Source of the DNA: Bugula neritina | Taxonomy: Eukaryota; Animalia; Bryozoa | Reading direction: 5' to 3' | Assembly (NCBI GenBank): GCA_964035545.1 | Contig: OZ037769.1 | Location: 558,001-622,000 of the forward strand | Length of the DNA stretch: 64,000 bases | Part shown: one piece after another, positions 27,292-64,000 of the stretch | Layout: every line of letters starts with the position of its first letter | Numbering within the stretch: position 1 is the stretch's first letter | Program-made: the position numbers and the translations under genes | Notes under the pieces: model-generated | Seen by the model: only the letters and a program-made list of their open reading frames with translations | What the model was told of the DNA's origin: nothing | Databases searched by the model: none

Positions 27292-30200
27292 CTACTGTCT
27301 ATCTGTACTATCATAGAGCTCATTGTCTAGCATGTTCACCTGCCCATCTGTTTTATCATAGAGGTCATTGTCCAACATCTCCACATTGACACTCCCTGCA
27401 GGTGCTCCAGAACTGTCATATAGACTGTTGTCCACAAACTCAACTTCATCTGCTTTGGGTGGTAATACCGGGGCCTCCTCGTAGATCGGCTGGGAAGGCT
27501 GAGATGAGATCTTGGGCTTTTTGTGATGATTTGGTTGAACTGATGCGTACAACTCAGCAACATTTCTATAACAATTTAAAGTATAAAATGTGAAACTAAA
27601 GATTGAATATTTTTATCTGAAAAACTAATTGTTACAGCTGTTTACATTTATTTAATAGCACACATTCTACCTATCTGTGAATCACACACCATGTGACACT
27701 ACAGATCATGTGACTTTATAAATGATGTGACCATGCTTTTAGGGCAAAACAATTCAAATAACTAATATATGAAAGTTTATTCTAGTAATTGCACATAAAT
27801 TCTCTGTTTCTCGTAGCTCCAGTAGGAGATTGCTCATGGGGAGCAAACTTCTCACATTGACTCAATAAAAGCTGCACTAAGACTCACCTGTGCTTTTCCT
27901 TGCTCAGGTTTGGCTTCTTTGGTAGATTATTGGCTTCTTGGGAGGCAGAACTTGCTGCTACAACAGAAGGGATACAGAAAGTTAGTCTACAAGATTCAAC
28001 CACTTTAATTAATGCAAACTCAAAGCACCTTTTTATGTTATAGTAATCTTTTGCTTATCACGTAATTGGAAAATAGTGGAAACTCTGAAGTATAAAAGTT
28101 TGATTACAGCATTTAAACAAGAAGCTTCATGTTTTGATACTAATTTGCTTCTATGTATGTACTAGTAAGATCAGACAGGTTGAGGTTAGCCTGTTCCCTC
28201 TAGTTCTATCATGTCAACCTAAGAGAAACCACGCTATACTCTCAGTATACTCTACCTGAGGTTGTAGCTGCAGCATAGGTAGGGTCCAATTCAAAGGCAG
28301 GATTATCTACAAGATTATGAAAAGGATATTTTCAAATTATCAACGTAATGTAACAACTCGGACTTTTGCCAAAAAATGTGTTAATTGATTGTAGTTTAGT
28401 GTTTCGCATACTAGTTAGTGATCAAGGACATAGTTGTCTTCCCTTTTCAACTGACTTTTATATAACTAACTGTTGAATATATGCTCCAATACTTAGTGTC
28501 ATATTCCAGAGAGTGGCTGATGCATTTCCTTTAAACCATGAAGTATTATTGCTATAGCAACTTAATGCACCATGATAAATAACACTGAATACTAAATCGT
28601 ATTGGATAGAATAAACGTTGACACATTTTAGTAAATATAGTAATAATCAGTAAATACTACAGTGATCATTGACTTATACATGATACGTGTCTAAAATAAT
28701 ATATCGAGAGAAAGTAACTCTCACTATAACTAATTTTAGAGAGAAATTACATGTACCTGTAGACTGCCTGTTATTTTCTTCTACACTTGCCTTGGTTGGT
28801 CTGAAACAGATGTGAACCTCACAGATTAACGTGGTACACATTGCAGGAAACAGCAGTTGGTTATGGAAACTTGAATATGTGTCATACTACATGTTAGTGG
28901 TATAATATTCATTTAACCACAGAAATGTGTTTAAATTATGTTCTCACCAGTCAAAGAAATGTGAAAGTTTCTATGAAGTAAAAGCACAGAATATGACCTA
29001 CTCCAAAATGCATTGCATTATAATATTCACATGAGAACTGGGCAGATAAAACTGTTTTTTTAATTATTTAAAAATGAGTGTTGAAGGAAATTAGCCATGG
29101 AATGTGTATGTATGCATGTATTGAGAACTTTGGGATGCAGGTACAGTATACAATCAGTTACGAATAATCTGTGATGAAGTGCACTGATTGGCTGACTCTA
29201 ACATTCCCATCATACTATAGACTCTATAAGCTCTGGAAATTTTTGAAAACTTCAGGGCAACTTTTAAATAAATATTACACTTATTTTTTTCATTAATTGA
29301 TATGGTGAGATGTATATAACTCTACAATTGATACAAATAATTTCTTGAAACAAAGGCTAAATATAAGCAGAGCAATATTTTTTTTTTTAGTTACTATAAT
29401 TGCCGTTTACAAATTCACTAGTCGAGAAATGAAATATATGTTTTTACAGGACAACATTTACGATAACATACTGCTATACAGTAATAAGTATATAATATGA
29501 TGCATTGTGGGATAGCCTGCATGAGTACCAACCTATGACGTAGACATCTAGCTATTAGGATCACTACTATAATCACCACCACCAGGGCTCCCCCTCCAGC
29601 TATCAGGGCAATGTGATATGGTTCTAAGATTTTTCCTGCATCTGCAAGGGGATATCAATACAGTAACATAACTTGTATCAAAGCAATACATATACAATAT
29701 CAAAATATTATATTCAAGATGTTAGCATATATTTATACAATTTTCTCAATTTCTTTTCTAATCATCAGGAAGAAAAGCTATGCAATTATGCAGTATTCTT
29801 TAAATATTGCTTGATTCAAATAAATCAATTTCAATATACTATGTATATATATAGCATAATATAATATAATTCAGAAATACATATAGAAATCAGTAATTAT
29901 CTTGTTGTACACTGCATTTCTTATTCTGTGTACAAAAAATTGTTTACCTCTAATTTATACTACTACCTCTACTTCCTGTTCATTACCATTACCATTACCT
30001 TTATTTTCAACACAACCAGGGTCATGTGACCAGTTACCAGACTCTGTACAGATAGGATCTGTAGTCTTAGAATAACCATCATCACATGAGTAGAGTAGAT
30101 TATCTCCTCCGTAATATCTGTCCAGTGTGATGGTACCACTAGCTAGGGTTAGTGCTGCTGGGTCACACTCAGCTGTTATAAAATACATTATACAAGTATG

Positions 30201-33200
30201 AAAAATATGCAACAAGCTAAATTTGAATTTATTCAAAGGAAAATATTAAAGAATTTCTACAAAGTTACTTTCATTCACATAAATAATCATTATAGATTGT
30301 ATATGTATAAATTATTATATAAATTGTAAATTATTAAAACTTTATAAATAATTACCTGTTTGTGTACATTCTGGAATACTGGACCAAGTTTTATCATGTT
30401 GACACTGTATCACATCCACGTTTGTTTTCTGGTAACCATAGTAACAGTCATATGATAAAACTTCTTGGTAGACATATGTTTGAGTTGTTCCTCCTTTAGA
30501 TGTGATTATAGTAGTGGAAGTATTGATGGAGAGATCAGTGATGTCGCATTTAACTGAAGTTATTAGAAAAGAAAAAATTTGCAGAGGACAATTGGAGCAT
30601 ATACGTATAGTGTAAAATCTGTTAGAGATATATTACTTTATAGCCATGGTATATTATTACTATATACATATACCTGGTGTACATGTTAGAGATATATTAC
30701 TCCATCTCCATGGTATATTATCTGTATCAGTAGAATTACATCTAGATACAACTTCTTCTATTCCATCTCTACTCTCATATCCTTTTATACACTCATATAC
30801 TGTTGTATGAGTATCAGTCTTAGTTTTAGTAGTAAACTCAACATTTCTTGGCTCTTCTGTACAGTAGGGGACTAAAAAAGACATTTAGAAGTATTACATT
30901 TAGGTATTAGAGAAGTCTATATAATTATATTATAATCTTTATGCTATGAATACATACCTGGAATACATCTGATCTCTGATTGGTTGACCCACTTAGCCTT
31001 TGTACCATCTACCTTACATTCAGAAGTTGAGTTATACTTCAACTGATGGTCAGTATCTTCACAAGAATAATTTATTATTGTACCAGGAAACCAGGGAGAT
31101 TCAGTAGATGGAGTACTTGTCACATGATCTATTTCAGGTTTATCTCCACATGTCAACACTGTAGAAGTATACATAGATTATTCTGTTATTCATTGTTTAT
31201 TAAATTAAACACAACAAGATAATAATTTGGTGTTTGCCTACATATAATGATTGCAGTTCAACATGATGACAAGTCATTGTATAATGATAATAGATATTAT
31301 TGAAAGAAAATCATGACTTTGCTTTTATTATAAATTTGATGTTTTCTCTTATAGCTATTTTCTATAATGATGGCTATTTTATAGCCCACATAGCTACATT
31401 ATATATATTTTAAAAAATATATTAATGAAGCAATATTATATTCAAATAAGTACACATTAAACTATCCTAAAGGCAAAGATACAGGATCACAACTACTATA
31501 TAAGGAAAAAAACCGTTATGTATTAAGATAAGATGATGTAATCAACACCTTACATTAAGTAAATAAATTTGTACAAGAGCAACAGTGACTGGAGTGGCAT
31601 ATGATAATGAGTATAACTATTACATTTATGTGTATCATTGTACATTAGACTTTAGAGTATTTAATGTATAAAAACAGCCTATAAATATGATTAATACTTT
31701 AGCAATCTTCCAAATGGTGGTCTATATATAAGCCTAAATATTTTCTCTTATGAAAATCCTTCAGCTGGGTATTTCTAGAAATATGCATAGTATTCTGCCA
31801 TTTTATTGTCAGAGAAATTAATTAAAGCATTGAGTATCCAGTATACTATGAATTACCATTTATTTGCACCAAATAAAGTTTAACAATGCTAGTTGTTATA
31901 GCTTCTCCATGGAGGCCATTTTATTATCTTTAAAAATAATTTAATTTCAAAAACGTGTGGGCTTTTCAATAACTGATGTTTATCCTAGTACAGTTTCCCT
32001 ATTTCACATAATTATTCAGAAAATAAAACTTCCTATCATTTAACTTGAAAATTTTACAGTTTACAGTTTATATAACATAAATATCAAGTTAAAAGAACCG
32101 ATATTTCATAAGCAAGCAATTTACACGGTGAGTGATAGAAGTTTTACAATGCAATAAGCCAGGAAGTGTTTTTTAGAATGCAAATATTAGACACTGTTTC
32201 AAAGCTGTTAGATAATCACCATGGTTACCCTAAGAAATTATCGTATAAATCTTCATTGCCAAATTATTGATGAAATTATCAGTTGCAGCAGAAATGTGAC
32301 ATAAAATAACTAGTGACTTATATATGTACTTTATATATAATAAAAATTATGCTGTAAAAGTAAATAAATGTATTATTATAGGATGAAGTGTGTTGTGTGG
32401 AGTCCACTATAAGACTTAAGTCTAGTGGACTATATATACCTCTGAATTCAGAGGTATATATATCCATGGATGTTTATATTGAATTATATATTGTTAGCAT
32501 CATATTAAACTTGCTATATAAGCACTATATATTGTTTTAAAATGTCTAAAAGTTGATGAATTTGCTAATGTTAACTATTTATTTAGAGTAATAAAAAGTT
32601 TCCCCTTAAAATAAACAGGTACAAAATAATAGTAAATGATAGATGCTGATCTTGTCTTGATATTCTACTGTATTTGAAATAAAGTAGCAGTAAATTCTCT
32701 TACTCACCTGTAAACTGAATCATAAAGAATACAGACTCTGCATCTCCATGGACAGGATCTCCCTCATTTTCATATCTCACAGAAAGTTGGTTGTTTGTGG
32801 AGGTTATGTTATGTAGATATCCATCAGGGAAATTAGGAACCTTCTGATTATCAATAAACCAGGAGGTTCTGGATGATTCTGTAAACTTAGAAATCATGTC
32901 AAACTTAACATAGTGAGCTTCACTTGGTAGGTTTGATATTGTAAAATCACAGGATGGTAATGGCTGCATATTAGTTGTATAAGAGCTGGTGAATATTCCA
33001 GTCAACTGTTCAACTTGAGGTCTGTCTGGTATCTGAATATCTTCACCACAAGATGTTACTGTAATAGACATATATGCCTGCCTTATAATGTATCTATTAT
33101 TTTGTCAAATTCCACTTTATACCATGTATATAACAGTTTTGAAATAAGACCACTTAAAGCAAAGCTATAGCTATATCTATAGCTAGCTATATAGCTCATA

Positions 33201-34795
33201 TTAGTTCCGAGAAACACACATGCCTACCTTGCGCTGCTTTTTGTATAAATAAATTGCATATTATATAGTAATTTAAAGTATCTACTTGACTGATGCTTAT
33301 ATATAATGAAAACTAAATATAATATCAGATGGTGAAATTTAAATTATGCACGTTGATGTTCATATGCTTTGTAGTTATACGAACTATTTTAAAATCTAAA
33401 TCAAATCAAATTTACTATCATGCTAGTAAAGTTTACTTTACACTTATCACAATCAGTATTTGTTTTTAAATTTACCTGTTGTAAAGAACTCTAGGTTAAA
33501 TCCTGTCATGTTGCTGAGAGTAGAAACTGATAATACAGACTGTTCTTGAGTGAACCTCTGTATAATACCAGGTTCTCCAAAGTCAATACAGTATGTTGTA
33601 CCATCTATCTGTATTTCTGGACAGATTATAGCACCTGTTTCAGGTGTCCTAAATCCTGGTATACTGATATAACTATCAGCAGGTGTTCTCAGAGTTAGAC
33701 TACATCTAACAGGTGCTCCCTCTATCTCTCTATGTTCTATTATCCCTGCATATCCTCTATCAAATTTCACTGTGTTATTATCACATATATTCACTGGTTT
33801 AATATCTTGTCCTTTTATAAACAGGGTAAAGACACAGGATATCAGTATGAGTTGCAGAGTGGTAGGCTGAAATTATACAGTTTAGACAATATCATGCTAC
33901 ATTATAACTCTCATTAGATGATTAAATGCATGGGTTGTAGAGCTTTCACTTATGCTTTTCATTAACGCTACTCCAGTTCATTTGTATCATATTTAGTTTC
34001 ATCATCACTACTTCTCCATGCCTATCACATTACGTGAATGGATTTTTCATTTAAGGCATGACCGTAGTAATATAAAGCTACAATAGACACATTACATATT
34101 TATCTGCAACTTTTAATGGTAAACAAAAGCTAAACTATGTCTACATAAGCTAAAGCATTAGGATAAAAGCAACCAGGAAATTGAGACCCAAACGTAATGG
34201 ATGAAATCTCAACTTAAGTTCTTTAATTTTAAACATAATATTTATGGGGATAAAAGTTTCCCTTTTCACTTGCAATTGTTAACTAAAGTAGGATATACTG
34301 TTAATGGGGATGAAATTTAGCAATATGAGTATGTTTTACTAGCTTTAGTATGCTAAAGCAAAGGTTTACCACAAAACTTGATTTGCTTGCTGCAACACAA
34401 TGCTTAATCACTGAGCTGGCTTAAAAGTGTAAACTTACAAGCCAGCTCAGTAATAGGCTGTGTATTGTAGCAGCCATGAAGATTACATAGAGCGAAGGTT
34501 AGCTATAACTAGAATTACTAAAGCACAACTCCGAAGCCAACAAGGAATCAAAACTCCCAAATTTTATTATAATAATATAAAACAAACTTGTTTGGACATA
34601 CAATTTTCAAATAGCAACTATATAATTACTTTATGTTGAAGGAATTAGTATATAATATTAGAATGCCAGATTTCCCAGAGCAATATTAAAAAGGTAGTTT
34701 GGCAACAGCAGCTTAAATTGATCAACTTTACTCAATTAAACAGTTTATTTTGCATCATACTGCAAGATGTTATTTTAAAAGCTGTTACTCACCAT
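27292..34795 (-). CDS. Receptor paralogue A: signal peptide - 2 CUB-like - 4 CCP/Sushi - TM - Tyr-rich tail without ITAM, 12 coding exons, ~687 aa
   Basis: Exons 34795-34793 (ATG only), 33866-33476, 33058-32708, 31158-30958, 30871-30674, 30553-30356, 30172-29999, 29641-29533, 28800-28757, 28306-28256, 27957-27888 and 27565-27292 total 2064 nt. Domain exons are phase 1-1 apart from the first. Sushi pattern C..Y.C..GY..C...W....C. TM IALIAGGGALVVVIIVVILIA. Confidence 0.85.
32401..32471. repeat. Three abutting short palindromes (32401-32431 with a 3-nt bulge; 32431-32462 perfect; 32462-32471)
   Basis: agtccacta[taa]gacttaagtctagtggact; tatatatacctctgaattcagaggtatatata; atccatggat. Confidence 0.85.
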
Positions 34796-36100
34796 TTTGA
34801 AAGAATGCATCTCTGATAATATAATCTAAGATTATTATAGTATTCTTACGACTTGCCACGTCTACTGTATAATATAGTATATTATAACTCTACCCTTGCA
34901 ATATTTGATAAGTCTCAAGTTTAGTAAATATTAACTTTAATCAACACAGCCTTCTTTATACACAGAGCTGTGAACTTCCTTGTATGACTATACACACATC
35001 ACTATACAATATACTAGCTATCTATTTAGATGACTGATATAGCTTCTGCTTTACCTCAACCTATTCTTCTTGTTTATTTAGTGATTATTGTGTCTTTGTA
35101 GTCTACATAATAGAATACATGACTATTCTATTCAACACTAGAAATAGTAAGCAGTGATTATCATGCAACTTTTAGACTGTCTCCATGGTGAAGATTGAGA
35201 GCATAGGAGATGATATTTTGTTACAATTTATCTTTAATAGTTTTATTATAATATCATGGAACTAAGAAATCATATAGTCTATATAATATAATATTATAAT
35301 AATAAAACATTCACAGATATATTCCAATCAGAAAACTATATATAATAAGTAATCAAACACAATCAATATACATTTACTGTTATCTTATATTGAAATAAAC
35401 AAACAACAGAATTGAAAAACTATTTTATCATAAATTTTTTATTGAAAATAATTGAATTATATGGCAACAATGTCTCAACGTAATTCTGCAATCAAAATAA
35501 AATATTATTACAAACGTCTTCTAACAGAAATATTAATTGATTATATCAATATTTGATTAAATGCATATGATTGTCTAACTGATGAATATACCTAAAGTTA
35601 TGTCCCCTTGCAATGTAACCCGAGACTCCCATAATATTGTATTATATTCATTTCTCTAGGCAATCTCATGGTTGATTTCTGCATATAACTATTTTGATTT
35701 ATATCATTAAAATAAGTCAAAAATAATAAATATGCATAAGGTTACGGAACTCAGGAATTAATTTTACCATAGAAGAGCAGAAATTTTAACCCAGTTGTTA
35801 GTTTAATTATCTTACTGAACTATATTATAGAGATCTATTATTTTAGAACCTTGAAAGCAAACTCAAATTAAATTTTCTACTGATAACTAGCACTTTGCAT
35901 GCTTATATAATAAGTTAAAGAGCCTGTATAAAGTATGTCTAATGGCAAGATATGTCCATAAGAGAAGTAAATCACTTATACTAAATAGAGCTGCAAAATG
36001 TTGCTATAAATGCTGTGATTCAGTTGAATATTATAGATTTGTCAAAACCATTTTAATCATTTGTTCTTTCAATTCTGTTCATTATTATCAGTTTCTCTCT

Positions 36101-39100
36101 CTACTTTCTATCTGTACTCTCATAGAGCTCATTGTCTAGCATGTTCACCTGCCCATCTGTTCTATCATAGAGATCATTGTCTAGCATGTTCACTCTACTA
36201 GTTCTATCATAGAGGTCATTGTCCAACATCTCCACATTGACACTTCCTGCAGGTGCTCCAGAACTGTCATATAGACTGTTGTCCACAAACTCAACTTCAT
36301 CTGCTTTGGGTGGTACCACCGGGGCCTCCTCGTAGATTGGCTGGGAAGACTGAGATAAAATCTCGGGCTTCTTGTGATGATTTGGTTGTACTGATGCATA
36401 CAACTCAGCAACATTTCTACCAGGAAACAACATCATATATTAGTTTAGATAATAACAAGGTAGGATACAAAATATCATGCATTACATAATATGCTACCAG
36501 TACATAGTTTTTCTGGGAATCATTTAAGTCATATGCTCACAAACAGCTAAACCTCTTTCTCAAGATATATCATCCATGTGAAGTTCATTTTATACGCAAT
36601 TAAGGTTAACCCCAACATGTGTTTGATGCAATACAATAAGAAAAAAGGTGGAATGCTTTAATACAAATTTTGATTCATTTCTAAATTTAAAAAAGTAAAA
36701 TTTAAATCATAAATAAAAACTATCAGTTTTCTGCATCTAGTTTAACTGGAGTCGTGAAGCCCAGGTGGCTTAGCACAGCTAGTCTTTTAGCACGTGTTCC
36801 CCAAACATATAAGCTCTACAACCACCAAGACACTCTGCTACCCACCCAAACTTCTTCTGGTTTGGTTTAGGTTTCGTCATAGGAGCAGGCTTCTTGACCA
36901 CGCCCCCTGATATCTCAGCGTAAGCGGAAGCCTCGTCTTCAATCACACCATAAGGCCCGTTGTTTCCGACACTTCCCTGACCTACAATAGGAAGTTGCCG
37001 ATATATTCAGAGACTACAAACTCAACTATACACGCAGATATCATAAAGAGTTTTCAGTGAAGATAAATGAAACTATTCATTGGAAAATCATGTGTCTTGA
37101 ATTGTATTAACAGCTACCTGAATTTTCTCATAAAATATACCGAAGGATAAGATAGAAGTTGCCTACTCTCATATCTATAGACGAAACGTGTGTATTACTA
37201 TATGATTAAGGAGGTAGTCCTGTTAGATATATTCGTACCACAGAAGTAAGTAACAACTTTAGTTACGACAACTTACCTGGCACAGTTGGAATTATATCTG
37301 GACGTTCTAGCTCAAAATATGGATTCTCTACAAGAATACAGCTGAGGTAGAAGCATTGCTTTTAAAGCTCATTGGTACAGAAGCTGTGTGTTTACAGTAT
37401 AAACTATGGAGGAGGAGAGAAAACGCTAAGACTTCATATTGGTTAGACTTAGTTCCTATTAACATGGGAAAAGAGAGTGATAGGCTGCCTTGAACTACGT
37501 TAGCTATATATGCTATCAGGAAGGGTGGGTTGTATACCGTCCCAAACCAAGCAGACAATGCAGTTTACTGTGAAAGAGAAACTTTGAATATAATGTTTAT
37601 TCCTTCGAATAAAGTATTTCTTGACCCTCATGAAGAGCTTATGTTTACAAAGAGTAGTAGCTAGTGAAAGTAGTATATTCCTCCATACAGTTGAATGATA
37701 TTTTGGTATATTGATCATGTATACTATTATACTGTGTAGTAGTAGCTAGTTAAAGTAGTGTATTCCCCCCTCCCCACACAGTTAAATGATATTTTGACAG
37801 AGAATAATATTTACCTTTGCTGAAAGATTGTCTGTTATTTGCTTCTCCTGAAGGGGCCTCCTTAGGGCTGTTAATAATCAAATAGAAAAAATAAGGTGGA
37901 GTTTTCAAAATCTTCATTATTTGAGATTCACATGCCATTGTAATTGCAACAAGTATTATACATAACTTCCAAGGTGGTATAGTGCATAACATATTATCTC
38001 ACTTTAGTTTTAGCAGAGCAAATCAAGTTGTTTCTTGGGGCTCCATAAACTAAACGCAAAAGATAATTTACAATATCATTTAGCATGTAAGATGTACTAC
38101 ATAAGATATAATATGTTATAGCATGCAAAGAGGTATAATACTATATCATAATATCCCTTATATGTTGCGTAATATTATTATGTAATGTAGTGTTATGAGA
38201 TTACAGGAAATGAATTTTGATTTACAAGTAAGTCAATATTTATAGTTAAATATGTTTACTTATATTATAATATACTGCTATACAGCAATAAATATAATAA
38301 TCTGATACATTGTGGGACAGCCTGAGTACCAACCTATGACGTAGACATCTAGCTATTAGGACTACGACTATAATCACCACCACCAGGGCTCCCCCTCCAG
38401 CTATCAGAGCAATGTGATATGGTTCAAAGAGCTTTCCTGTGTTTGTAACAAATATCAATACAGTAACATAACTTGCATCAAAGCAATATGTATAATATAT
38501 ACAATATCAAAATATTATATTCAAGATGTTAGCATATATTTATACAATTTTCTCAATTTCTTTCACCAGGAAGAAAAACTAAGCTTTTATGCAATATTTT
38601 TTTAATATTGTTTTGATTCAAATAAAATTCAATTTCAATATACTATGTATATATAGCATATAATACATTTCAGAAATACATACAGAAATCAGTAATTATC
38701 TTGTTGTACACTGCACTTTTTATTCTGTGTACAAAAAGTTGTCCACCTTTATTTTATACTACTAGCTCTACTTCCTGGTTATTACAATTACCTGGTGAAT
38801 CAGTTGTGGCAATCACAGGATCTTTATTTGATACGTCACAACCAGGGTCATGTGACCAGTTACCAAACTGTGTACAGACGGGATCTGTAGTCTTAGTATA
38901 ACCATCATTACATGAGTAGAGTAGATTATCTCCTCCGTAATATCTGTCTAGTGTGATGGTACCATTGGCTAGGGTTAGTGCTGCTGGGTCACACTCAGCT
39001 GTTAGATAATATATTATACAAGTATAGAAAATATGCAACAAGCTAAATTGGAATTTATTCAAAGGAAAATATCTAAGCCCTTCTACAAAGTTACTTTCAT

Positions 39101-45100: not shown

Positions 45101-46364
45101 TACAAATTTTAATTCCTTTCAGTAAAAAACACTGCTCAATGCTCTTTATTCTATCATAGTCTGTTAAGTTGCTATTTAAACAAACTAGAATTTTATTGGG
45201 CATTATATTAATTGGTGTATAATTCTTCGAAATTTGAAGCCTTAGAAAACTAATAAATAACCGTAAAAATTGCCTGATTTGCTAATTGTCAAACTTTTGG
45301 AATATTCTAACTAATATAATTACAACATTGAAATGATTAGCCAATATGTCATTTAGAGGAAATACTAAACAGTATAACAAAAAATTATAATGTATTTTGC
45401 CAAAAGCTTTAGAAGGGCATCTCAGAATTAATGCAAATATTTCTGCAGATTTAATAGCTTGTAGCCTATACATACATGTTGATGAAACCAAAATGTGCCC
45501 TGGCAAGGTCTCACATAGGATGCATGCATTATTAATATGTTGGATTTTAACATATGCACAGATAAATAGTAACAATTATTGAAACAGGTGTTAATTTTAT
45601 TTTGCTTTTAGTTAGTGACAAAAAATTATTAGCACTACCTAAATTATCAACAGGAAATACAGTTGCATCTTTTTTTATTTAATAATTTTTGCCACCAACA
45701 AGCTCAATACTGGTGCCAGATATACTTAATATTCCTAATATGATATGAATGCTTCTTCTTCATTTTAATTATATGGACATAAATGTTCTACTTTCCACTT
45801 GCAATTGTTGACTAAAATTGTGATACTGTCAAATTATAAGGACAAAATTTAGCAATATAAGCATATTATTCTAGTTTTGGAATTGTAAAACAAAGGTGTT
45901 TCACTAAACTTGATCGGCATACTGCAACACAATGAAGCTTAATCACTGAGATGGCTTACAAGTGTAAACTCTCAAGCCATCTCAGTGAAAAGCTGCGTGT
46001 TGCAGCAGCTAAGGATAGCATATGGAACAGAAGTTAGCTATAATTAGTATTATTAAAGCACAATCTCAAAATCAGCTGGGAAATGTAGTCTGCATGCATT
46101 CTGCAAGGAATCAGACTTCCAAGTTTATTATAATATAAAACAAACTTGTTTGAACATACAATTCTCAAAGAACAACTATATAGTTGTTTTATGTTAAGGA
46201 TTAATTATTGAAGTTAATATATTATGTTACAATGTCAGATTTCCCAGAGCAATATCAAAAAGGTAGATTGGCAACAGCAGCTCAAACTAATCAATGTTGC
46301 TAAAAACAGTCTATTTTGCATCATACTGCATGTTGCTATACTTTGAAAGATGTTAACTCACCAT
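36101..46364 (-). CDS. Receptor paralogue B: signal peptide - 2 CUB-like - 4 CCP/Sushi - TM - tail with ITAM and 4 DNxLY repeats, 12 coding exons, ~739 aa
   Basis: Exons 46364-46362, 45018-44622, 44503-44150, 41378-41175, 40074-39877, 39379-39182, 38998-38792, 38436-38334, 37867-37815, 37327-37277, 36981-36846 and 36416-36101 total 2220 nt, all phases compatible. ITAM YGVIEDEASAYAEI at 36911-36952. Confidence 0.87.
40724..41170. repeat. Diverged tandem duplication (~247-bp period) in a paralogue B intron
   Basis: taatactagctatgt...gctaaaagcagca...cagtgaccaccaacccagtgctgct occurs from 40724 and again from 40971. Confidence 0.8.
43879..44078. repeat. Two back-to-back perfect spacerless palindromes (66 bp, 43879-43944; 134 bp, 43945-44078)
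   Basis: Symmetry checked by eye around centres 43911/43912 (gggtataccc) and 44011/44012 (ttattataataa). Confidence 0.93.
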
Positions 46365-47734
46365 TTTGAAATAATGCATCTCGTAGAATATAATCCAGCT
46401 CTAACTGAAAGCTATTACAATATTCTATTATAGTTGAACATTTACCTTTGCTACTATAGTCACATCTACTGTATATATAATATAGTGTATTATAACTCTA
46501 CCCTTGTGATATTTGATAAGTCTCAAGTTTAGTAAATATTAACTTTAATCAACACAGCCTACTTTATACACAGAGCTGTGAACTTCCTTGTACGACTATA
46601 CACACATCACTATACAATATACTAGCTATCTATTTAGATGACTGATATAGCTTCTGCTTTACCTCAACCTATTATTCTTGTTTATTTAATGATTATTATA
46701 TCTTTGTAGTCTACATAATAGAATACATGACTATTCTATTCAACACTAGAAATATTAGGCAGTGATTATCATGCAACTACTATAAGACTGTCTCTACTGT
46801 GAAGATTGAGATGCTATTTTGTTACAATTTATCTTTAATAGCTTTATTATAATATCATGGAATTAAAAAATTATATAGTTTATGTAATAATATAATAATA
46901 TAACATTCACACATGTATTTCAATTAGAAAACTATATAATAAGTAATCAAACGCAATAAATATACATTTACTGTTATCTTGTATTGAAATAAACATACAA
47001 AAGTTTTTAATAGAATTGAAATAGTAATTTATCATAAAATCCGTCTTGAAAATAATTGAATTATACGGAAACAATGTCTCAACGTAATTCAGCAATCAAA
47101 ACAAAATTTATTTAAGCATAATAAAATATTACAAATGTCTTCTAACAAAATATTAATTGATTATATCAATATTTGATTAAATGCATATGATTGTCTAACT
47201 GATAACTGATAAGCATACTTAGAGTTATGTCCCCTTGCAATGCAACCTGACAGTCCCATAATACTGTATTATATTCATTTCTCTAGGCAATTACTTGGTT
47301 GATTTTTGCATATATTTATTTTGATTTATATTATTAAAGTAAGTTAAGAATAATAAGTATGCATACTGTCACGGAAGTTTCAAATCAAGTTTACTATAGA
47401 AGGGCTGAAATTTTAACCCAGTTGTTAGTTTAATTGCCTTACTGAACTATATTATAGAGATCTATTATATTAGAACCGTGAAAGCAAACTCAAATTAAAC
47501 TTTCTACTGATAACTAGCACTTTGCATGCTTATATAATAACTTAAAGAGCCTGTATAAAGTATGTCTAATGGCAAGATATGTCCATAAGAAAAGTAAATC
47601 ACTTTTACTAAATAGAACTGCAAAATATTGCTATAAATGCTGTGATTGAGTTAAATATTACAGATTTGTCAGAAACATTTTAATCATTTTTTTTTAAATT
47701 CTGGGCATGTGTTCATTACTATCAGTTTCTCTCT

Positions 47735-50700
47735 CTACTTTCTATCTGTACTCTCATAGAGCTCATTGTCTAGCATGTTCACCTGCCCATCTGTTCTATC
47801 ATAGAGATCATTGTCTAGCATGTTCACTCTACTAGTTCTATCATAGAGGTCGTTGTCCAACATCTCCACATTGCCACTTCCTGCAGGTGCTCCAGAACTG
47901 TCATATAGACTGTTGTCCACAAACTCAACTTCATCCGCTTTGGGTGGTACTACCGGGGCCTCCTCGTAGATTGGCTGGGAAAACTGAGATAAGATCTCGG
48001 GCTTCTTGTGGTGATTTGGTTGTACTGATGCGTACAACTCAGCAACATTTCTACCAGGAAACAATGTCATATATTAGTTTAGATAATAACTAAGTAGGAT
48101 ACAAAAAACAATATTACATAATATGCTACCAGTACATAGTTTTTCTGGGAATCCTTTGAGTCATAGGCTCACAAACAGCTAAACCTTTTTCTCAAGATCT
48201 ATCATCTATGTGAATTTCATTTCATACACAATTAATTTGAACCCCAACATGTGTTTGATGCAATACAATAAGAAAAAAGGTGGAATGTTTTAATACAAAA
48301 TTTGATTCATTTATAAATTTAAAAAAGTAAAATTTAAATCATAAATAAAAACTATCAGTTTTCTGCATCTAGTTTAACCGGAGTCGTAAAACCCAGGTGG
48401 CTTAGCACAACTAGTCTTTTAGCATGTATTCCCCAAACATATAAGCTCTACAACCACCGAGACATTCTGCTACCCACCCAAACTTCTTGTTTGGTTTAGG
48501 TTTCGTCATAGGAGCAGGCTTCTTGACCACGCCCCCTGATATCTCAGCGTAAGCGGAAGCCTCGTCTTCAATCACACCATAAGGTCCGTTGTTTCCGACA
48601 CCTCCCTGACCTGCAACAGGAAGTTGCCGATATATTCAGAAACTACAAACTCAACTATACACGCAAATATCATAAAGAGTTTTCAGTGAAGATAAATAAA
48701 ACCATCCATTGGGAAATCATGTGTCTTGAATTGTATTAACAGCTACCTGAATTTTCCCATAAAATATACAGAAGCATAAGATAGAAATTGCGTACTCTCA
48801 TATCTATAGACATAACATGTATATTACTATATGATTAAGGAGGTAGTCCTGTTAGATATATTAGTACCACAGAAGTAAGTAACAAAATTAGTTACGACAA
48901 CTTACCTGGCACACTTGGAATTATATCTGGACGTTCTAGTTCAAAATATGGATTCTCTACAAGAATATAGCTAAAGTAGAAGCATTGCTTTTAAAGCTCA
49001 TTAGTGCAGAAGCTGTGTGTTTACAGTACAAACTATGAAGGGGGAAAGAAAACAATAAGACTTCATATTGGTTAGACTTAGTTCCTATTAACATGGGGAA
49101 AGAGAGTGATAGGCTGCCTTGAACTACGTTAGCTATATATGCTATCAGGAAGGGTGGGTTGTATACCGTCCCAAACCAATCAGACAATGTAGTTTACTGT
49201 GAAAGAGAAGTTTTGAGTATAATGGCCATTCCTACGAATAAAGTATTTCTTGACCCTCATGACCAGCTTATGTTTACAAAGACTAGTAGCTAGTTAAAGT
49301 AGTATATCACCCCCCCCCCCCCCCCCCATACAGTTGAATGGTATTTTATGACAGGGAATAATATTTACCTTTGCTGAAAGATTGTCTGTTATTTGCTTCT
49401 CCTGAAGGGGCCTCCTTAGGGCTGTTAATAATCAAATAGAAAAAATAATGTGAACTCCTCAAAATCATCATTATTTAAGATTCATATGCCATTGTAATTG
49501 CAACAAGTATTATCCATAGCTTTCAAGGTAGTATATTGCATAACATATTATCTCACTGTAGTTTCAGCAGAGCGAATCAAGTTACTTCTTGGGGTTCCAT
49601 AAACTCAACGCAAAAGATAATTTACAATATTATTTAGCATATAAGACATACTACATAAGATATATGCTATAGCATGCAGAAAGATATAATACTATATAAT
49701 AATATCCCTTATAATTATGTTGCGTAATATTATTATGTAATGTAGTGTTATGAGATTACAGGAAATGAATTTTGATTTATAAGTAATTCAATCTTTATCC
49801 AAACTATATACTCTGTACCTGTAACAGTACTACAGTATTACATCATAGTATAATAATATGATGCATTGTGAGATAGCCTGAGTACCAACCTATGACGTAG
49901 ACATCTAGCTATTAGGACCACTACTATAACCACCACCACCAGGGCTCCCCCTCCAGCTATCAGAGCAATGTGATATGGTTCTAAGATTTTTCCTGCTGCT
50001 GTAACTGGATATCAATACAGTAGTGTAACTTGTATCAAAGCAATATATATATACAATATAAAATATTATATTCAAGATGTTAGCATATAGTTATACAATT
50101 TTTTCAATTTCTATTCTAATCACCAGGAAGAAAAGCTATGCAATTATGCAATATTTGTTTAATATTGTTTTGATTCAAATAAAATTCAATTTCAATATCC
50201 TATGTATATATAGCATAATATAATATATTTCAGAAATCAGTAATTATCTTGTTGTACACTGCATTTCTTATTCTGTGTACAAAAAATTGTCCACATTTAT
50301 TTATACTACTAGCTCTACTTCCTGGTTATTACAATTACCTTGTGAATCATTTGTGTCAATCACAGGATCTTTATTTGATACGTCACAATCAGGGTCATGT
50401 GACCAGTTACCAGACTTTGTACAGACAGGATCTGTAGTCTTAGTATAACCATCATCACATGAGTAGAGTAGATTATTTCCTCCATAATATCTGTCTAGTG
50501 TGATGGTACCATTAGCTAGAGTTAGTGCTTCTGGGTCACACTCAGCTGTTAGAAAATACATTATACAAGTATAGAAAATATGCAACAAGCTAAATTGGAA
50601 TTTATTCAAAAGAAAATATCTATGACTATCTACAAAGTTAATTTTATTTACATAAATAATCATTACAGATTGTATATGTATAAATTATTATATAAATTGT

Positions 50701-53700
50701 GAATTATTAAAACTTTATAAATAATGACCTGTTTGTGTACATTCTGGAATACTGGACCAAGTTTTATCATGTTGACACTGTATCACATCCATGTTTGTTT
50801 TCTTGTAACCATAGTAACAGTCATATGATAGAACTTCTTGGTAAACATATGTTTGAGTTGTTCCTCCTTTAGATGTGATTATAGTAGTGGAAACGTTGAT
50901 GGAGAGATCAGTGATGTCACACTCAACTAAAACAGAAGTTGAGCTCTAAACATCTCTACAGCCACAGCCTACTATATATACAAATATCATGCATTTGGTA
51001 TAAACTATACAGTATATTTTATGCAGAATGATACTGTGCACTTTCAAACTTATTTAAAAAATGACCTCAAAAAACTAGCATTCTGTAACTAAAATAAATG
51101 AAACTTTAAATTATGTATAATTTTTCATATTGCGATTTAATAACAATAATATGACAATGCAGAACCTAGGCATGCTGCCTTTGGGTTAGCAAACAAACTA
51201 AGCAAATAGAAGTATTTATTTCATAGCAATTGTTAAGTGTTCAACATTGAGGAAGTGCAGCAGTAGCTTTACAAGGCAGAGTAATTATATTTTATACATT
51301 TAGTTGCTGCAGTTTTGAGTATGGCTATATTGAGCCTTTCTAAATTAATATACTGTTAGTATAAACACATTGTTTTTAGATTACTCCATATGCATGGTAT
51401 ATTATTACTATATACATATACCTGGTGTACATGTTAGAGATATATTACTCCATCTCCATGGTACATTATTACTATATACATATACCTGGTGTACATGTTA
51501 GAGATATATTACTCCATCTCCATGATATATTATTACTATATACATATACCTGGTGTACATGTTAGAGATATATTACTCCATCTCCATGGTATATTATCTG
51601 TATCAGTAGAACTACATCTAGATACAACTTCTTCTATTCCATCTTTACTCTCATATCCTTTTATACACTCATATATTGTTGTATGAGTATCAGTCTTAGT
51701 TTTATTAGTAAACTCAACATCTCTTGGCTCTTCTTTACAGTAAGGGACTAGAAAATACAATTTAAATATTGGCTCTTCTGTACAGTAGGGGACTAGAAAA
51801 TAAATGCAATAGTAATAACATAATATTATTAGCTTATAAAACATAGTGCCATATCTAAAAGGTCACAAAGTAAAGTAAATAGTGAGATACTATACTAAGT
51901 TGCAGACTGGAGCTAATTGTCACCATGTTCCTATACTTTGCATTATGCAAATAGATATTTTAATCAAAATAATCAGTCTCAGTACTCTGAGGGAGTTGAG
52001 AGGCCAGGGGAGCCTGAGCCTGATGACTGAAAGAGTAGTAGATAGGCCAGTGAAGTTTAGAGAACTGGGTGGGATGCACTGTAGCATTTACCCAGTGGTC
52101 CAGTGTGTAATGGTTAGCACACTTGCTTGCAAGCCAGAGGTCTCGGGTTCGATTCTCAGCGGGAGAAAATTATTTTTTAGAAAGTATTCTATTCAGTTAT
52201 CAAAGAGTTAATTTGATAAATAATATATAATCGTTACTATATGCATCCTTGTGTTATGAAGACATACCTGGAATACATCTAATCTCTGATTGGTTGACCC
52301 ACTTAGCCTCTTTACCATCTACTTTACATTCAGAAGTTGAGTTATACTTCAACTGATAGTCAGTATCTTCACAAGAATAGTTTATTATTGTACCAGGAAA
52401 CCAGGGAGATTCAGTAGATGGAGTACTTGTCACATGATCTATTTCAGGTTTATCTCCACATGTCAACACTGTAAAAATATATTTACCAAATCATAAGAAA
52501 AATTCAAAGTTATAATTACAAAAACTTTCTTATAGCTACGATATACACCGTACCACTCTTTTCAGTTCAATATATTGATAGCTGTAAAAATTACCTAAAT
52601 ATCCTTGCTATCACTACGTTTCCGTTTCCATTATCGCGAATGGATTTTTTCATTCGGCTAATGGAAACAGTTACATCGAATGAAACCGCAACTATAAGTT
52701 AATGCAAACCACAAACCACAAAAAATCCGTACGGGGCATTCATTCGCATTATGCGCAGTCATGGAAACGCAGTGTATAGCTGTGATGGTGTTTGTCTTTT
52801 CAATTGCTGCATTATTAAAATCGCTGCATGAATATATAACATTATTATCAATTAATTATAATCTACTTCATGCATGGCAGAGTTTTCAGCATATTATAGT
52901 GTTAGTGGATGAAATGAAACTATTAGTAGCCTATTAAATCACTGCGTTTCCATGACTGCGCATAATGCGAATGAATGCCCCGTACGGATTTTTTGTGGTT
53001 TGTGGTTTGCATTAACTTATAGTTGCGGTTTCATTCGATGTAACTGTTTCCATTAGCCGAATGAAAAAATCCATTCGCATAATGCGATAATGGAAACGCA
53101 GTGTATGTAAAATAGCTGCCCCCAGAGGGATTCAAACCCAATTCTTCTAACTACATTACACTGTGGGCGCTACTGCATATGGGACATTTATAAATTAGTT
53201 CGAACCTGTATACTCAAGTATTCCAACGTTATAAACAATGTATTCAAAGAACATATAGCAACTCAAGTAAATAAATACACTGATAGTGGAGCGAATGCTT
53301 GTTTGGGAATTTTTCTGGTAAGTTCATATTTTAATTAAAGCAGTTGCTTTAAAAATACTTTTACAAATATTAGTTTAACTTTTTGTTTAAATTAATCTTT
53401 ACAGAATAAGTTCTTAGTCTTAAAAAATCTTTTCAGATTTCATTTTGCCACAACAGTTCTACTAATTTTCTGTCTTTTGCATAGAAAATGCATGGAATAC
53501 TAGATTGATTTTGAGTAGCTGCAATGTAGTATTATTAGTATTATTACGTAGTAATATTACATGTATACTAATATATAGTAGCATAATGCTACGCTACTAT
53601 GTAAGCTTTGTCTAATAGTGATTCTGCTATAATATGAAAACCTGTGCTGCACTTATTTGAATTAATATGCTATATACTCATGTAAAAGCCAATCAAAAGC

Positions 53701-56700
53701 TTTCCTAAATTCAGATTTTCATTTGCTATTATAGGTGTGCCAACCTATGAATTATTTGGCAACTCAAATATTATTTCCTACCTAGAAATAAGTGCCCAAA
53801 TGACCATAGTTTGGAGAAAATGCATGGTGTAATTAAAAACAAGTTAGCCTATAAGCAGTAGACAGCAATAGTGATTCAAATAGTTTTTCAGTGTTTATAT
53901 TATTAGAATATTAATAAATATGTTTTTAAAACCCATTTAGCTAGTTTTCATTTAAAATAAGGGACAAGCACAAAATATTAACAAGTTTGTTATGGGTTAT
54001 AATTTTGGCTGTTCTTTCTAAAGTAAAAAAATGAACCGGAAGCCTATATATAGGTAATGGAACACTGTTAAGTCTAACTGTTGTTTGATTTAATGTAACT
54101 GTTAGTAAACCTACTCTTGTTGTTGTTTATTATGTGATAAGACTACCAACTAGTTATATACACAGGCACAGGTTAAATAATCTGTAGGAAATAGGAAGTT
54201 GGGAAAATATAAATTTATAGAAATCAAAAAATTACAAGAGCTCTACGATCTGGCAAAAATGACTGACATTGTGGAGTCTTATTATAGAGATAGGACTTTG
54301 AATAGGCCTGTGGACATTAGAAAAAGTAATTATGTTACATATGAAACAACAAACATTTACCTTGTTTTTTTTTATAATTTATATATAGCATGCATGGAAT
54401 GTTATTGTGGAGATGCTGTTTGAGTTTAAATAAAATAAGCGATAATTTATTTACTGCTTTTGAGTAATATTTTAAGCAACAGATAAAGCATTTACGAACA
54501 TGGTATTTTAATATAGAACATTGAGATAGTTGCTAGAGCTTATCAAATAACTTGATAATATTATATTGAGTAGTTACACATTTCGCAGCCAGCCCTGCCA
54601 TGACCTAGCCACAGTAATCTATATCTTAGAAGAGCATTTCAATAGAATATATAACTTGTTAACAAATTAAAAGCACCATGAAATATAGGGTAGTAAAGTA
54701 AAACAAGCATCAGCTATGTAAGACATAACTGATGCAAAGGAAGTATAATACTTGGTTTCACAAGGCATAGACTAATGGCATAACTCAGATTTACAGCTAA
54801 GCTGTGCAGGCAACAAGCAATCAAAATTGCTAGTAAAATTTATCTTTTTTGAAGGAATGAAACTTATAAACTGAATATATATAGAGACTAAAATCGTTTA
54901 AATGTTAAACTTTATAATGTTCATTAAATCAGCAATTAAATTTCTCACTCACCTGTAAACTGAATCATAAAGAATACAGACTCTACATCTCCAGATACAG
55001 GATCTCCCTCATTTTTATATCTTACAGAGAGTTGGTTGTTTGTAGAGGTTATGTTATGTAGATATTCATCAGGGAAATTAGCAAACTCCTGATTATCAAT
55101 AAACCAGGAGATTCTGGATGATTCTGTAAGCTCAGTAATATCAAACCTAACATAGTGAGTTTCACTTGATAGGTTTGATATTGTAAACTCACATGATGGT
55201 AATGACTGTTTATTAGTTGTATCATAAGAGCTGGTGAATATTCCAGTCAACTGTTCAACTTGAGGTCTGTCTGGTATCTGAATATTTTCACCACAGGATG
55301 TCACTGTAAAATAAATATGCTTATTGTATAATTATAATTAGTAACAAAAATGTGTACGTCTTATTTTCTCATTTTGTGTGTATAGTTCTACACTTTACTG
55401 TCATACCATGTATATTTGGCATAAAACTGAACAAAATTAATTAGTGAACAAACTTTTAAATTATACGTGTACATGCCTTGTATTGTATTATTGATTTACG
55501 TATCCCAATTGCAAATAGTTACGTAAGATAGGGTGTGCATCTGATTAAAAAGGGCACAGGTAAAATGGCACAAATGGGAAAGTTATACGTATTACGATAT
55601 TACAACTTATATCTATTTTATGCGTATCAATTCAATAATTTTATATATAGAGGAGCCATAGTTGAATTACAAGCTCTAAGTTTTATCTTCTAAATTGTTG
55701 CAAATTACTTCACCTCTTTCGCTTAAGAGCGTTTTAAGTGAACTACCAGATGGAAGGAAATATATGGAATCAAAGCAGAAACTTTCAAGTAATCGAATAT
55801 TTTTCAGGTTTTTTGCATAAAAAATAAGCAAACTCAAAATTCATTTTTTTATAAAAAATGTTGCCCAGCTTCTCAAGTTTTAAGAGCTCAGTCAAGTGAA
55901 TTCAGGCATGTATTGTCTGCAACATGATCTCAAAGCTGGGCAATGACCTAAAGTTGGAGCTATAAAAGACATCCCACTCAGCAGATATTGATAATACTTT
56001 GTTATAGCATGTGGGGCTAGTTGACCAGAAATTAATGATATGTGATATTAGGTTGCATATATTTCGGTTTTATGTAAATCCAGGAGTGTACAGGTGTTTA
56101 ACTGAAGCTATATGCATGAGATGCCTTTTTTTCAAATAATATGATATAATAAAATATAATTTTTATAATTTTGTTTATATTATATTCATTCAATTTCAAA
56201 GTTTAAAGTAGTCAAATGTATTCAAATATCATCCGCATGCAGATGATGTACATATATTTGACAGCAATAGATGGGGGTGTCTAACTGGAATGACAGTAGT
56301 TGAACCACATTATTATAGGAAGTGGGATGAGTTAAACCAGCTAAAACTTGCTCCACGAATTACTTTAACAATATTCATTATAATTGGGCACACCAATTTT
56401 TGTATTTTGCAACTAAATTTGTTCTGTCATAAATATATAAATCCAAACATGCACTTAGTCTGAAAACAAAGGGAAATGTTATAGGTCAACAGCGTAACTA
56501 CAAATATAAACTATTCTGCAAGTGTTTTCAGAATTGCACAAAATTACAAAAAACAAAAAGGGAGCAAATTAGGAAAGCCTATAACTACAGCAATGAATAT
56601 GGTAAAGCTTAAGGCAGCGACGTAAATAATCGTTGACAGCGTTCAAACAGCCCTTTGATAAATAGTTTTTCAGCTCTATAAATAGTTAAAACAATGTATA

Positions 56701-58419
56701 GTGTAGGATGAATGGCACTGGTTCAGCTTTTACACAGGGTAGTTTAACTTGCCCCCTACCTGAACTTGTCTTGCTAAAAACTTATTCTAGTAAAAAGTTG
56801 GCTTTATCTTACCGAGTAAAATGTTTATACGTTTAGTCTTAATCGACAAAGACAGCAACCTGTCTTCAGATTGGCAAAAATATCTTCAAAAATTATGTTT
56901 TGAAAGCCGTATTTTTGTTCAACAAGCCCCACCTTCCCCTACAACATGTATATGATAAAAATTGGCACACACCAATTATAATCATTTATTTTATTTAATA
57001 GTTACCTGTTGTAAAGAACTCCAGGTTAAATCCTGTCACATTGCTGAGAGTAGAAACTGATAATACAGACTGTTCTTGAGTGAACTTCTGTATTGTACCA
57101 GGTCTTGTAGAATCAATACAGTATGTTGTATCATCTATCTGTATTTCTGGACAGACTTCACGATCTTCCTCAGCTACACTAACTCCTAGTATACTGATAT
57201 TGGTACCTGCAGGTGCTCTCAGAGTTAGACTACATCTAACAGGTGCTCCCTCTATCTCTCTATGTTCTATTATCCCTGCATATCCTCTAATAATTGTCTG
57301 TGTATTATTATCACATATATTCACTGGTTTAATATCTTGTCCTTTTATTAATATGATGATACTGGCTATCAATGTGAGCTGCGGAGTCGTTGGCTAAGAA
57401 ATACAAATATAATGTAAGTACATAAAAAATGATCTATTATTACAACACTCAATATAATTACCATGTATGTACAAATTTTAATTAACTTTTGTATAAAAAT
57501 CTGAGCAATGTCATAGATTGCATCAGTATCATAGCTTTTCGGTTGCTATTTAAACAAGCTAAAACTTGTCAGTGCGATTTTTATTATAGGTGTAAACTTC
57601 TTTACAACTTGAAGTCCTGTACCACTGCATGTATAATCTGAAAAGTCGCCTGCAGTCTTATAATGGGCTCTTATCGGGATTGGCAAACTTTGAGGATATT
57701 CTAGCAATTAATTCTGATTTTTTAATTATTAGTCAATGTCATTTAGTAGAAAAATATAGTAGGCCTACAATAAAGTATTATAATGCATTATATCACAAGG
57801 TTTAGAGGTGCATGGGCACACGCAAACTATTTCTGCAGATCTGATAAGGTATCTACCCTATGCATGTTTGTATGCATGTTGATAAAACAAACAGCTGCCA
57901 TGGTAAAGTCTCTAACGTGGTGGATACATTACTAATACATTTGGATTTAGTAAGCTCGCGCTGCATATAATAGTAACAATTAACACGAACACCAACTAAA
58001 CTAGTTTTTCAACTCTATATTATTCAGTTAAAATTCTTTATAACCATAATCAGTAAGCCTATCATAAACACATGTAAAATTTACTTCTACACTACACTGC
58101 ACTGCACTACAACTGCCACAACAGATATAGGTGTTGAGGTGTATGCAGAACTCTATGCATTCAGCGGGTTATAGTCACTAAATTAATTCTAATCTAAGAG
58201 CAGAAAGTCACTGATAGGGTTGTACTATGCAAGAAACACTTGACTGTAGAATGCTGACTAAAAGCAAACTTCTGCAGTACAGCATGCAGTTCAATGTAAA
58301 CAAAAATAAACTCAAAACATGCGTGGTTTTTTATCAGAGCAGTTAGATCTCAACAAAAGTAATAACATGAAACAGTAGTCTCGTTAATTTACTTATTATT
58401 CATTCCGGTTACTTACCAT
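47735..58419 (-). CDS. Receptor paralogue C: signal peptide - 2 CUB-like - 4 CCP/Sushi - TM - tail with ITAM and 4 DNxLY repeats, 12 coding exons, ~735 aa
   Basis: Exons 58419-58417, 57393-57006, 55303-54953, 52468-52268, 51747-51550, 50926-50729, 50545-50339, 49998-49890, 49421-49369, 48956-48906, 48610-48478 and 48050-47735 total 2208 nt. ITAM at 48540-48581. Confidence 0.87.
51409..51598. repeat. 64-bp tandem triplication spanning the CCP2 exon end and 5' splice site of paralogue C
   Basis: tatatacatatacctggtgtacatgttagagatatattactccatctccatg(g/a)ta is repeated three times. Confidence 0.9.
52091..52166 (+). mobile_element. tRNA-derived SINE head or tRNA pseudogene
   Basis: A-box-like gtgtaatggttagc and B-box ggttcgattc with tRNA-like spacing. 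The acceptor and anticodon stems are imperfect. Confidence 0.5.
52612..52774 (-). mobile_element. Non-autonomous DNA transposon (MITE, CACTG termini, 3-bp TSD TAT), copy 1
   Basis: Reverse complement of copies 2 and 3. TIR CACTGCGTTTCCAT, with the left end slightly mutated. TAT flanks both sides. The empty site is visible in paralogue B near 41511-41530. Confidence 0.88.
52940..53103 (+). mobile_element. MITE copy 2 (164 bp, 14-bp TIR CACTGCGTTTCCAT)
   Basis: TIRs at both ends; near-identical to 63003-63166. Confidence 0.9.
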
Positions 58420-63539: not shown

Positions 63540-64000
63540 GTTAGAATTAGTGTGTACTATTATATAGTTGGTATAGTTTATTCATCTTTATAATATAACC
63601 ACTCTCTAAAGTAGATGGAATATTGTCCCTCGGTTGTCATTCAAAATATTCAGTTTGTCATGGTTTATACAAACATGCACATACTAATATGTAGTTAGAT
63701 GTTTGGAATTCCAACAATACAATGACAAGACAACTCTTAACACTAAATAAATAAAGCATTTGACATGCATTATAAGTCTACTAGTTGCACACAATCAAAG
63801 TATCTTATTTCATAAACTGTGTTCTCTCAGTCAGTATTTACCCATCTCTACTTTCACTGAGGCTGTAGTCAACCAGTTCTGTTTATATTTTAGTATAATC
63901 TTTCTATTCACTTCCTCCTTCCCCATAGTGTATATATATATCATAGTTTAGACTGAGGGCTAGTGTCACTTTGCTTGAGGGTGGCGCTCTCTACGCCCAC

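Follow-up and report, generated by a model that had tools for sequence, protein, structure and literature searches.

Four described systems stand closest to the genes reported here. First, Alr of Hydractinia comprises 41 clustered genes for single-pass receptors with divergent tails and many ITAMs (immunoreceptor tyrosine-based activation motifs), whose V-set/I-set immunoglobulin (Ig) and Fn3 domains were recognisable through structure prediction alone (bioRxiv 10.1101/2022.03.04.482883); Alr1 and Alr2 are genetically proven allodeterminants with many alleles. Second, FF/FcoR of the colonial Botryllus are clustered type I receptors of demonstrated function, with a Sushi domain, an Ig-like variable domain and tail tyrosine motifs, in which cognate gene pairs carry ITIMs (immunoreceptor tyrosine-based inhibitory motifs) or hemITAMs, and ectodomains and tails are mixed between genes under birth-and-death evolution (PMC12582321). 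Third, the SEZ6/CSMD proteins are encoded by few conserved genes; SEZ6 has three CUB and five CCP (Sushi) domains, and a short tail that bears an NPxY motif (PMC7396870). Fourth, GRC and PTC2 of the lophotrochozoan Biomphalaria are clusters in which single-pass membrane genes are hyperdiverse and linked to resistance against parasites; the PTC2 proteins lack known domains, and most of their divergence, found between old haplotypes, is at synonymous sites (PMC7494358). Here we compare with these systems a locus of the bryozoan Bugula neritina, contained in a stretch of 64,000 nucleotides (hereafter the window; C5:558001-622000 of the 216-Mb assembly). It holds three receptor genes, A, B and C, and genome-wide exon searches raised the family from the three members of the original prediction to 22 on C5. 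On balance, and with modest confidence, we read these genes as lineage-specific receptors for variable non-self (microbe, parasite or symbiont) that would signal through Src and Syk/Shark kinases.

The three genes were rebuilt exactly within the predicted bounds, 27292 being the stop of A and 58419 the ATG of C. Their models are as follows (window coordinates, as throughout unless C5 or another sequence is named).

58419-47735, reverse strand: gene C, 12 exons, 735 amino acids (aa), based on reading frame, splice sites and spliced contigs; exons 58419-58417, 57393-57006, 55303-54953, 52468-52268, 51747-51550, 50926-50729, 50545-50339, 49998-49890, 49421-49369, 48956-48906, 48610-48478, 48050-47735.
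46364-36101, reverse strand: gene B, 12 exons, 739 aa, based on reading frame and splice sites; exons 46364-46362, 45018-44622, 44503-44150, 41378-41175, 40074-39877, 39379-39182, 38998-38792, 38436-38334, 37867-37815, 37327-37277, 36981-36846, 36416-36101.
34795-27292, reverse strand: gene A, 12 exons, 687 aa, without ITAM, based on reading frame and splice sites; exons 34795-34793, 33866-33476, 33058-32708, 31158-30958, 30871-30674, 30553-30356, 30172-29999, 29641-29533, 28800-28757, 28306-28256, 27957-27888, 27565-27292.

All introns are GT-AG with common phases and the frames have zero internal stops, in agreement with the prediction of three intact 12-exon paralogues; the shared plan holds for the phases, but not for the sequence of exons 9-11, which in A share only 34-59% identity with their counterparts in B and C. 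From the N-terminus, each protein has a signal peptide, followed by two domains of some 110 aa each, four domains of Sushi size, a single transmembrane (TM) helix and a 150-189 aa tail. Exon 2 shares 79% identity with B. neritina EB796_018054. Exon 1 reads as the single ATG codon that had been proposed; since a second in-frame ATG lies 15 nt (five codons) upstream in A, B and C, it may instead encode six residues. Database searches and structure predictions were run one exon at a time, whereas frame and motifs were checked on the spliced translations.

The ectodomain of gene C is laid out in the following exons.

57006-57393, reverse strand: exon 2, signal peptide and divergent CUB domain 1 (CUB1); in B 45018-44622, in A 33866-33476.
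54953-55303, reverse strand: exon 3, divergent CUB domain 2 (CUB2); in B 44503-44150, in A 33058-32708.
50339-52468, reverse strand: exons 4-7, four Sushi/CCP domains, each on one phase 1-1 exon; in B 41378-38792, in A 31158-29999.
51377-51792, reverse strand: exon 5 with its surroundings, an in-frame acceptor being duplicated (51792 and 51747) and the donor lying in 44-nt tandem copies.

Sequence searches of Pfam and PDB with exons 2 and 3 returned no CUB or other match, and there is no Pfam CUB match either in the only full-length homologue found outside Bugula, the uncharacterised protein XP_067929890 of Watersipora subatra. In hhalign, CUB2 was linked to canonical CUB (probability 92%), and CUB1 neither to CUB2 nor to canonical CUB. 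We folded CUB1 and CUB2 separately with AlphaFold from paralogue alignments, and searched the models with Foldseek. First, the CUB1 model (pLDDT 88) matched the CUB domain of TSG-6 with E 1.2e-4, and gave a VIA Z of 9.0 with a root-mean-square deviation of 3.0 over 101 residues. Second, the CUB2 model (pLDDT 73) returned CUB-containing proteins in all of its top 24 rows, the best E of 0.005 being weaker than for CUB1. By these models both N-terminal domains of A, B and C are degenerate CUB folds, which upholds the CUB-CUB call even though Pfam misses both. An Ig fold was also considered for them and rejected, as the structure searches return CUB. A subset of CUB domains binds Ca2+ through a conserved Tyr and three acidic ligands (PMC6372009); judged by alignment rather than by coordinates, this signature is absent here, as the YD motif is missing from CUB1 and CUB2 and the loops are variable.

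Spermadhesin CUBs rank among the top fold matches, as would be expected if the family served gamete or larval recognition through fast-evolving CUB adhesion receptors, of which the sea urchin egg receptor EBR1 is an example. The strong divergence of the CUB exons between probable sibling species also fits such a role, with nonsynonymous rates (dN) of 0.11-0.13 against about 0.03 at the neighbouring gene. We nevertheless find it quite unlikely, given that the likeness to spermadhesin is no better than that to other CUBs, and that 22 paralogues with ITAM tails are atypical of gamete receptors.

For the Sushi domains, Pfam made a call only in exons 6 and 7 (Sushi 3 and 4). Sushi 1 (exon 4) matches chains of CR1, DAF and factor H, and Sushi 1 and 2 (exons 4 and 5) both carry the invariant CCP pattern C-Y-C-C-W-C; four Cys plus Trp, a length of about 60 aa and a phase 1-1 exon were found as expected for Sushi domains, so that all four of the Sushi units proposed are accounted for by one or more of these lines.

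The membrane and cytoplasmic parts are encoded as follows.

49890-49998, reverse strand: exon 8 of C, single uncharged TM helix; in B 38436-38334, in A 29641-29533.
48906-48956, reverse strand: exon 10 of C, ENPYFEL motif (NPxF / YxxL), its junction found in spliced contigs; in B 37327-37277, while A has DNPAF at 28306-28256.
48478-48610, reverse strand: exon 11 of C, ITAM, YGVI-x6-YAEI; in B 36981-36846.
47735-48050, reverse strand: exon 12 of C, YASV, YEEA and four hydrophobic-D-N-x-L-Y repeats; in B four at 36416-36101, in A three at 27565-27292.
27888-28800, reverse strand: exons 9-11 of A, membrane-proximal tail unrelated in sequence to that of B and C (the nucleotide identity given above), without ITAM.

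The TM exons of the three genes are 88-95% identical, and the tails hold six (A) or nine (B and C) tyrosines, both as originally described. The ITAM spacing YxxL/I-x6-8-YxxL/I occurs in B and C but not in A, and in B and C it departs from shuffled tails with a p of about 0.008. The Asn-Pro motif of the tails is NPYF or NPAF, no NPxY being present in A, B or C; the N-x-L-Y repeats of exon 12 presumably resemble the NPxY sites bound by phosphotyrosine-binding (PTB) domains. Genome-wide, the TM exon and the last exon have only the three copies of A, B and C, and the ITAM exon only those of B and C. Because there are no further genomic copies, no donor gene was found for any of these exons.

Tail motifs of the NPxF and N-x-x-Y kind would also suit a divergent SEZ6/CSMD-like or CR1-like protein acting in complement regulation, or in endocytosis and trafficking with the tyrosines as sorting signals. 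The matches of Sushi 1 to CR1 and DAF point the same way, as do the nearest language-model neighbours of the Watersipora relative, which are CUB/Sushi and SEZ6 clusters (score 0.90). This account seems rather improbable to us in view of the two N-terminal CUBs missed by Pfam, the lack of NPxY, the long tails and the 22 variable copies.

The 22 copies consist of the three described above, eight at 677-717 kb and eleven at 897-951 kb of C5, all on one chromosome arm, and the same genome-wide exon searches gave no family match at C5:730-880 kb. The other 19 copies have 2-4 Sushi exons, and one TM-plus-tail exon unrelated to exons 8-12 of A, B and C. ITAM spacing is present in 12 of the 22 tails, in three unrelated types (YGVI-x6-YAEI, YEQL-x7-YEQL and YEKL-x6-YENI), each with a shuffle p of 0.002-0.009; six tails have tyrosines without ITAM, four, all of them short, have one Tyr or none, and several are truncated. 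The architecture of two CUBs, four CCPs and an ITAM tail that had been proposed is thus that of B and C, and is not fixed in the family, where Sushi number varies, tails are of several unrelated kinds and A lacks the ITAM. At C2:28.888-28.890 Mb, on another chromosome, we noticed a distant relative in which CUB2 and three Sushi exons show about 40-45% identity.

Sequence variation is unevenly distributed along these proteins. Among 17 close paralogues, the mean ratio of nonsynonymous to synonymous rates (dN/dS) is 0.72 for CUB1, 0.80 for CUB2 and 0.26 for Sushi 1, pairwise values being also high in Sushi 2 (0.82) and Sushi 4 (0.74). Variation is concentrated at CUB1 residues 50-63 and about 100, and at CUB2 residues 55-64 and 98-110; the former take in a hypervariable loop of the mature domain (about residues 50-63), and the latter align with the acidic loops that bear Ca2+/ligand residues in canonical CUBs (PMC6372009). 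M1a/M2a site models, fitted with our own implementation, gave likelihood-ratio statistics of 23.9 (p 6e-6) for CUB1 and 36.1 (p 1.5e-8) for CUB2, whereas Sushi 1 and 2 both gave 0. In a tree-free count, with loops picked after the alignment had been seen, the proportion of nonsynonymous differences (pN) in the loops was 2.6-2.7 times the exon-wide proportion of synonymous ones (pS), but the count moderates the site-model result, as pS in the loops is itself elevated (values below). As read from these alignments, the CUB loops evade homogenisation and are, at the least, free of constraint, and positive selection on them is likely, though not proven.

Exons of different parts of the genes have different histories. 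In two copies the CUB exons stand at a synonymous divergence (dS) of 0.6-1.4, yet Sushi 1 at 0.08-0.15, and the tail exons of B and C are 96-100% identical. Approximately unbiased tests on CUB1 reject the clades B+C (p 0.004), A+B+C (p 0.0004) and tail class III (p 0.0008). Because genes that share a tail are rejected as CUB1 clades, these patterns clearly point to gene conversion moving ectodomain exons between copies, whatever the tail. Comparisons with other Bugula samples follow suit. The positional orthologue of C in GCA_010799875.2 differs by a dN of 0.11 and 0.13 in the CUBs and of 0.02 in Sushi 1, and in CUB1 it is nearer another paralogue (dS 0.047 versus 0.113); the B orthologue of a JGI Bugula sample has a CUB1 80% identical to B and about 90% identical to others. 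Since the peptidase gene next door shows a pS of about 0.20 between the two assemblies, with a pN of about 0.03 (148 codons), the other samples probably represent sibling species, and the differences are probably not allelic.

This bears on whether the cluster is a bryozoan histocompatibility or kin-recognition complex, in which allele-specific binding of CUBs among colonies or larvae would control fusion, rejection or kin-biased settlement. Bugula is a colonial animal with a clustered, ITAM-tailed family in which ectodomains and tails recombine, as in Alr and FF/FcoR; identity between CUB1s of other Bugula samples and those of the 22 never exceeds 91%; and in some populations of B. neritina, settlement is reported to be kin-biased (PMC10078279). 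If true, this would be a third independent invention of such a system, with CUB instead of Ig and the same ITAM-Syk wiring. We consider it unlikely, however: the divergence of the other samples is of the order seen between sibling species rather than alleles, three RNA studies have identical letters at most of the tail sites listed, and conversion across paralogues would blur locus-specific alleles. Of the original proposal of an immune or allorecognition system, the recognition family is supported, but allorecognition is not shown, as there is no ITIM-only partner and a conversion process that homogenises CUBs fits a repertoire facing pathogens or symbionts at least as well.

The A/B/C cluster genes are transcribed. 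Mapping of contigs covered exons 4-12 of gene C, and in three of three presumed RNA runs, from three studies, junctions 8-9, 9-10 and 11-12 are spliced as predicted, and so is junction 6-7; junctions 4-5, 5-6 and 7-8 are spliced in one run. Between exons 4 and 12, most junctions are thereby supported, where their lack would have spoken against the original proposal, and the ITAM exon 11 is present in spliced contigs of all three studies. In the tail exons, transcripts and window disagree by 5-8%, mostly at sites common to the three studies; the transcripts may stem from a sibling species and its orthologue of B or C. None of the exon 4-12 joins of gene C is present in a DNA-like run (X11), which may come from the source sample and whose variants match paralogue B. 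Introns of gene C at 51930-52170 and 52596-53103 contain abundant short repeats, one of them tRNA-like, with very deep coverage in all runs.

Taking these results together, we return to receptors for variable non-self as our preferred reading. A, B and C would be three of 22 clustered type I membrane receptors for a variable biological ligand, with two degenerate CUBs at the tip binding through variable loops and a stalk of 2-4 Sushi domains holding the tip away from the membrane. Following established ITAM biology, clustering by ligand may lead a Src-type kinase to phosphorylate the tail tyrosines, upon which the ITAM of B and C would recruit a tandem-SH2 kinase of the Syk/Shark type and the N-x-L-Y repeats could dock PTB adaptors, A and the short-tailed copies giving a different signal or none. 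The repertoire would be renewed by duplication and exon-scale gene conversion, with the tip loops escaping homogenisation. Layouts of SH2-SH2-kinase (C7:14.371-14.378 Mb) and SH2-SH2-phosphatase (C3:23.740-23.749 Mb) occur in the genome by domain coordinates. By analogy, loop variation and copy-to-copy differences in tails are as in immune recognition receptors of other animals. The lineage-specific recognition family first suggested is supported by expression, clustering, restriction to bryozoans in our searches, variable loops on the ligand side, ITAM spacing unlikely to arise by chance and the tandem-SH2 layouts.

Several observations pull the other way. ITIM matches occur only in those of the 22 genes that also have ITAM spacing, and no TM in the family is charged; with no ITIM-only partner and no charged TM, the classical paired-receptor design is not shown. 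The Syk/Shark and SHP2 assignments are candidates resting on domain coordinates, and the tail of the Watersipora relative has no ITAM. Site models such as those above can be inflated by recombination; and because synonymous sites in the loops are likewise raised (pS 0.22 and 0.16), pN/pS inside the loops is only 1.3-1.4, not significantly above 1 (P 0.16 and 0.07). These last values would suit a mechanically unstable tandem array under relaxed constraint with no adaptive recognition role, as would the truncation of several tails and the state of Sushi 2 in other copies, where one exon is frameshifted and one decayed (C5:918440-918633 and 684561-684755); being of phase 1-1, a damaged Sushi 2 exon could be skipped. 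We hold this account to be very improbable, given that A, B, C and nearly all CUB exons are intact, that Sushi 1 is under purifying selection and the genes are transcribed, and that the order C-B-A is kept in another Bugula sample.

Outside Bugula, XP_067929890 comprises a signal peptide, CUB1, CUB2, three Sushi domains, a TM segment and a multi-exon tail, with one domain per exon and about 30-40% identity. A length-limited search with this protein returned itself and no further full-length copy, and no full-length homologue outside bryozoans appeared in any search run; beyond bryozoans, the CUB2 profile matched a single CUB protein, from a lancelet (E 2e-4), and otherwise repeat proteins that bear bacterial-type domains and look spurious. 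Several short ENA/JGI matches, their source not named, were also returned, and two metagenome scans gave no loci. The Watersipora locus (OY755159.1:702695-744573) is likewise less than 1 Mb away from the end of a chromosome; it has internally repeated tail exons, and a further Sushi-like stretch nearby on the opposite strand.

Other genes of the window, and one feature of the assembly, were recorded alongside the cluster.

About 60800-64000, forward strand: Peptidase M8 gene, head-to-head with gene C, with an intronic 19-bp tandem repeat; the same neighbour is found in GCA_010799875.2.
24112-17312, reverse strand: gene of several exons, next downstream of gene A, in which Ig-like exons and a TM segment occur, its single exons without Pfam match.
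13956-12771, reverse strand: haem peroxidase exons (PF00141, a non-animal peroxidase type) in a bryozoan.
8656-3514, reverse strand: B-box / NHL TRIM-like gene.
2774-1239, reverse strand: open reading frames resembling, by eye, Penelope-type reverse transcriptase and GIY-YIG nuclease, with no Pfam match.
759-3346: inverted repeat of about 590 bp (759-1351 / 2763-3346) overlapping the Penelope-like frames.

Small contigs of the assembly (e.g. C10, C15, C33, C66, C176) give kinase and phosphatase matches that read through TAA/TAG only, and probably represent a ciliate contaminant.

We found no paper describing the family, nor one naming recognition receptors in bryozoans, and the Bugula genome paper mentions only weak Alr1-like matches. 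If our reading is correct, variable receptors built on CUB with ITAM tails add a non-Ig scaffold to the ITAM receptor clusters that have evolved repeatedly, and the cluster supplies markers for kin recognition, fusion and the handling of the bryostatin-producing symbiont in Bugula. No named family had been recognised at the outset, and membership was rejected in Alr, since the fold searches give CUB and not Ig; in FF/FcoR, for the CUB fold in place of an N-terminal Ig-like domain and the lack of FF-FcoR pairs; and in SEZ6/CSMD, for the two degenerate N-terminal CUBs and NPYF/NPAF instead of NPxY. In its workings the family is like Alr and FF/FcoR. With Alr, the family shares clustered single-pass receptors, divergent tails, many ITAMs and domains that emerge only from structure prediction, but neither homology nor proven allodeterminants. 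With FF/FcoR, it shares colonial life, type I receptors with Sushi domains and tail tyrosines, the mixing of ectodomains and tails, and evolution by birth and death, but it differs in its variable CUB, in ITAM spacing on a single chain and in forming a single tandem family in which no pairs are seen, and it is known from sequence where the function of FF/FcoR has been demonstrated. With SEZ6/CSMD, it has in common a CUB and Sushi ectodomain, a single TM and an Asn-Pro tail motif of the sorting type, and differs in domain count and order, in having degenerate CUBs where those proteins have canonical ones, and by its ITAMs. GRC and PTC2 resemble it as hyperdiverse lophotrochozoan clusters of the same broad class, but membership is rejected there too, PTC2 having no homology to it. 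The combination of a variable tip with a swappable tyrosine tail is a known logic; the parts from which it is built here, and the phylum, are new.

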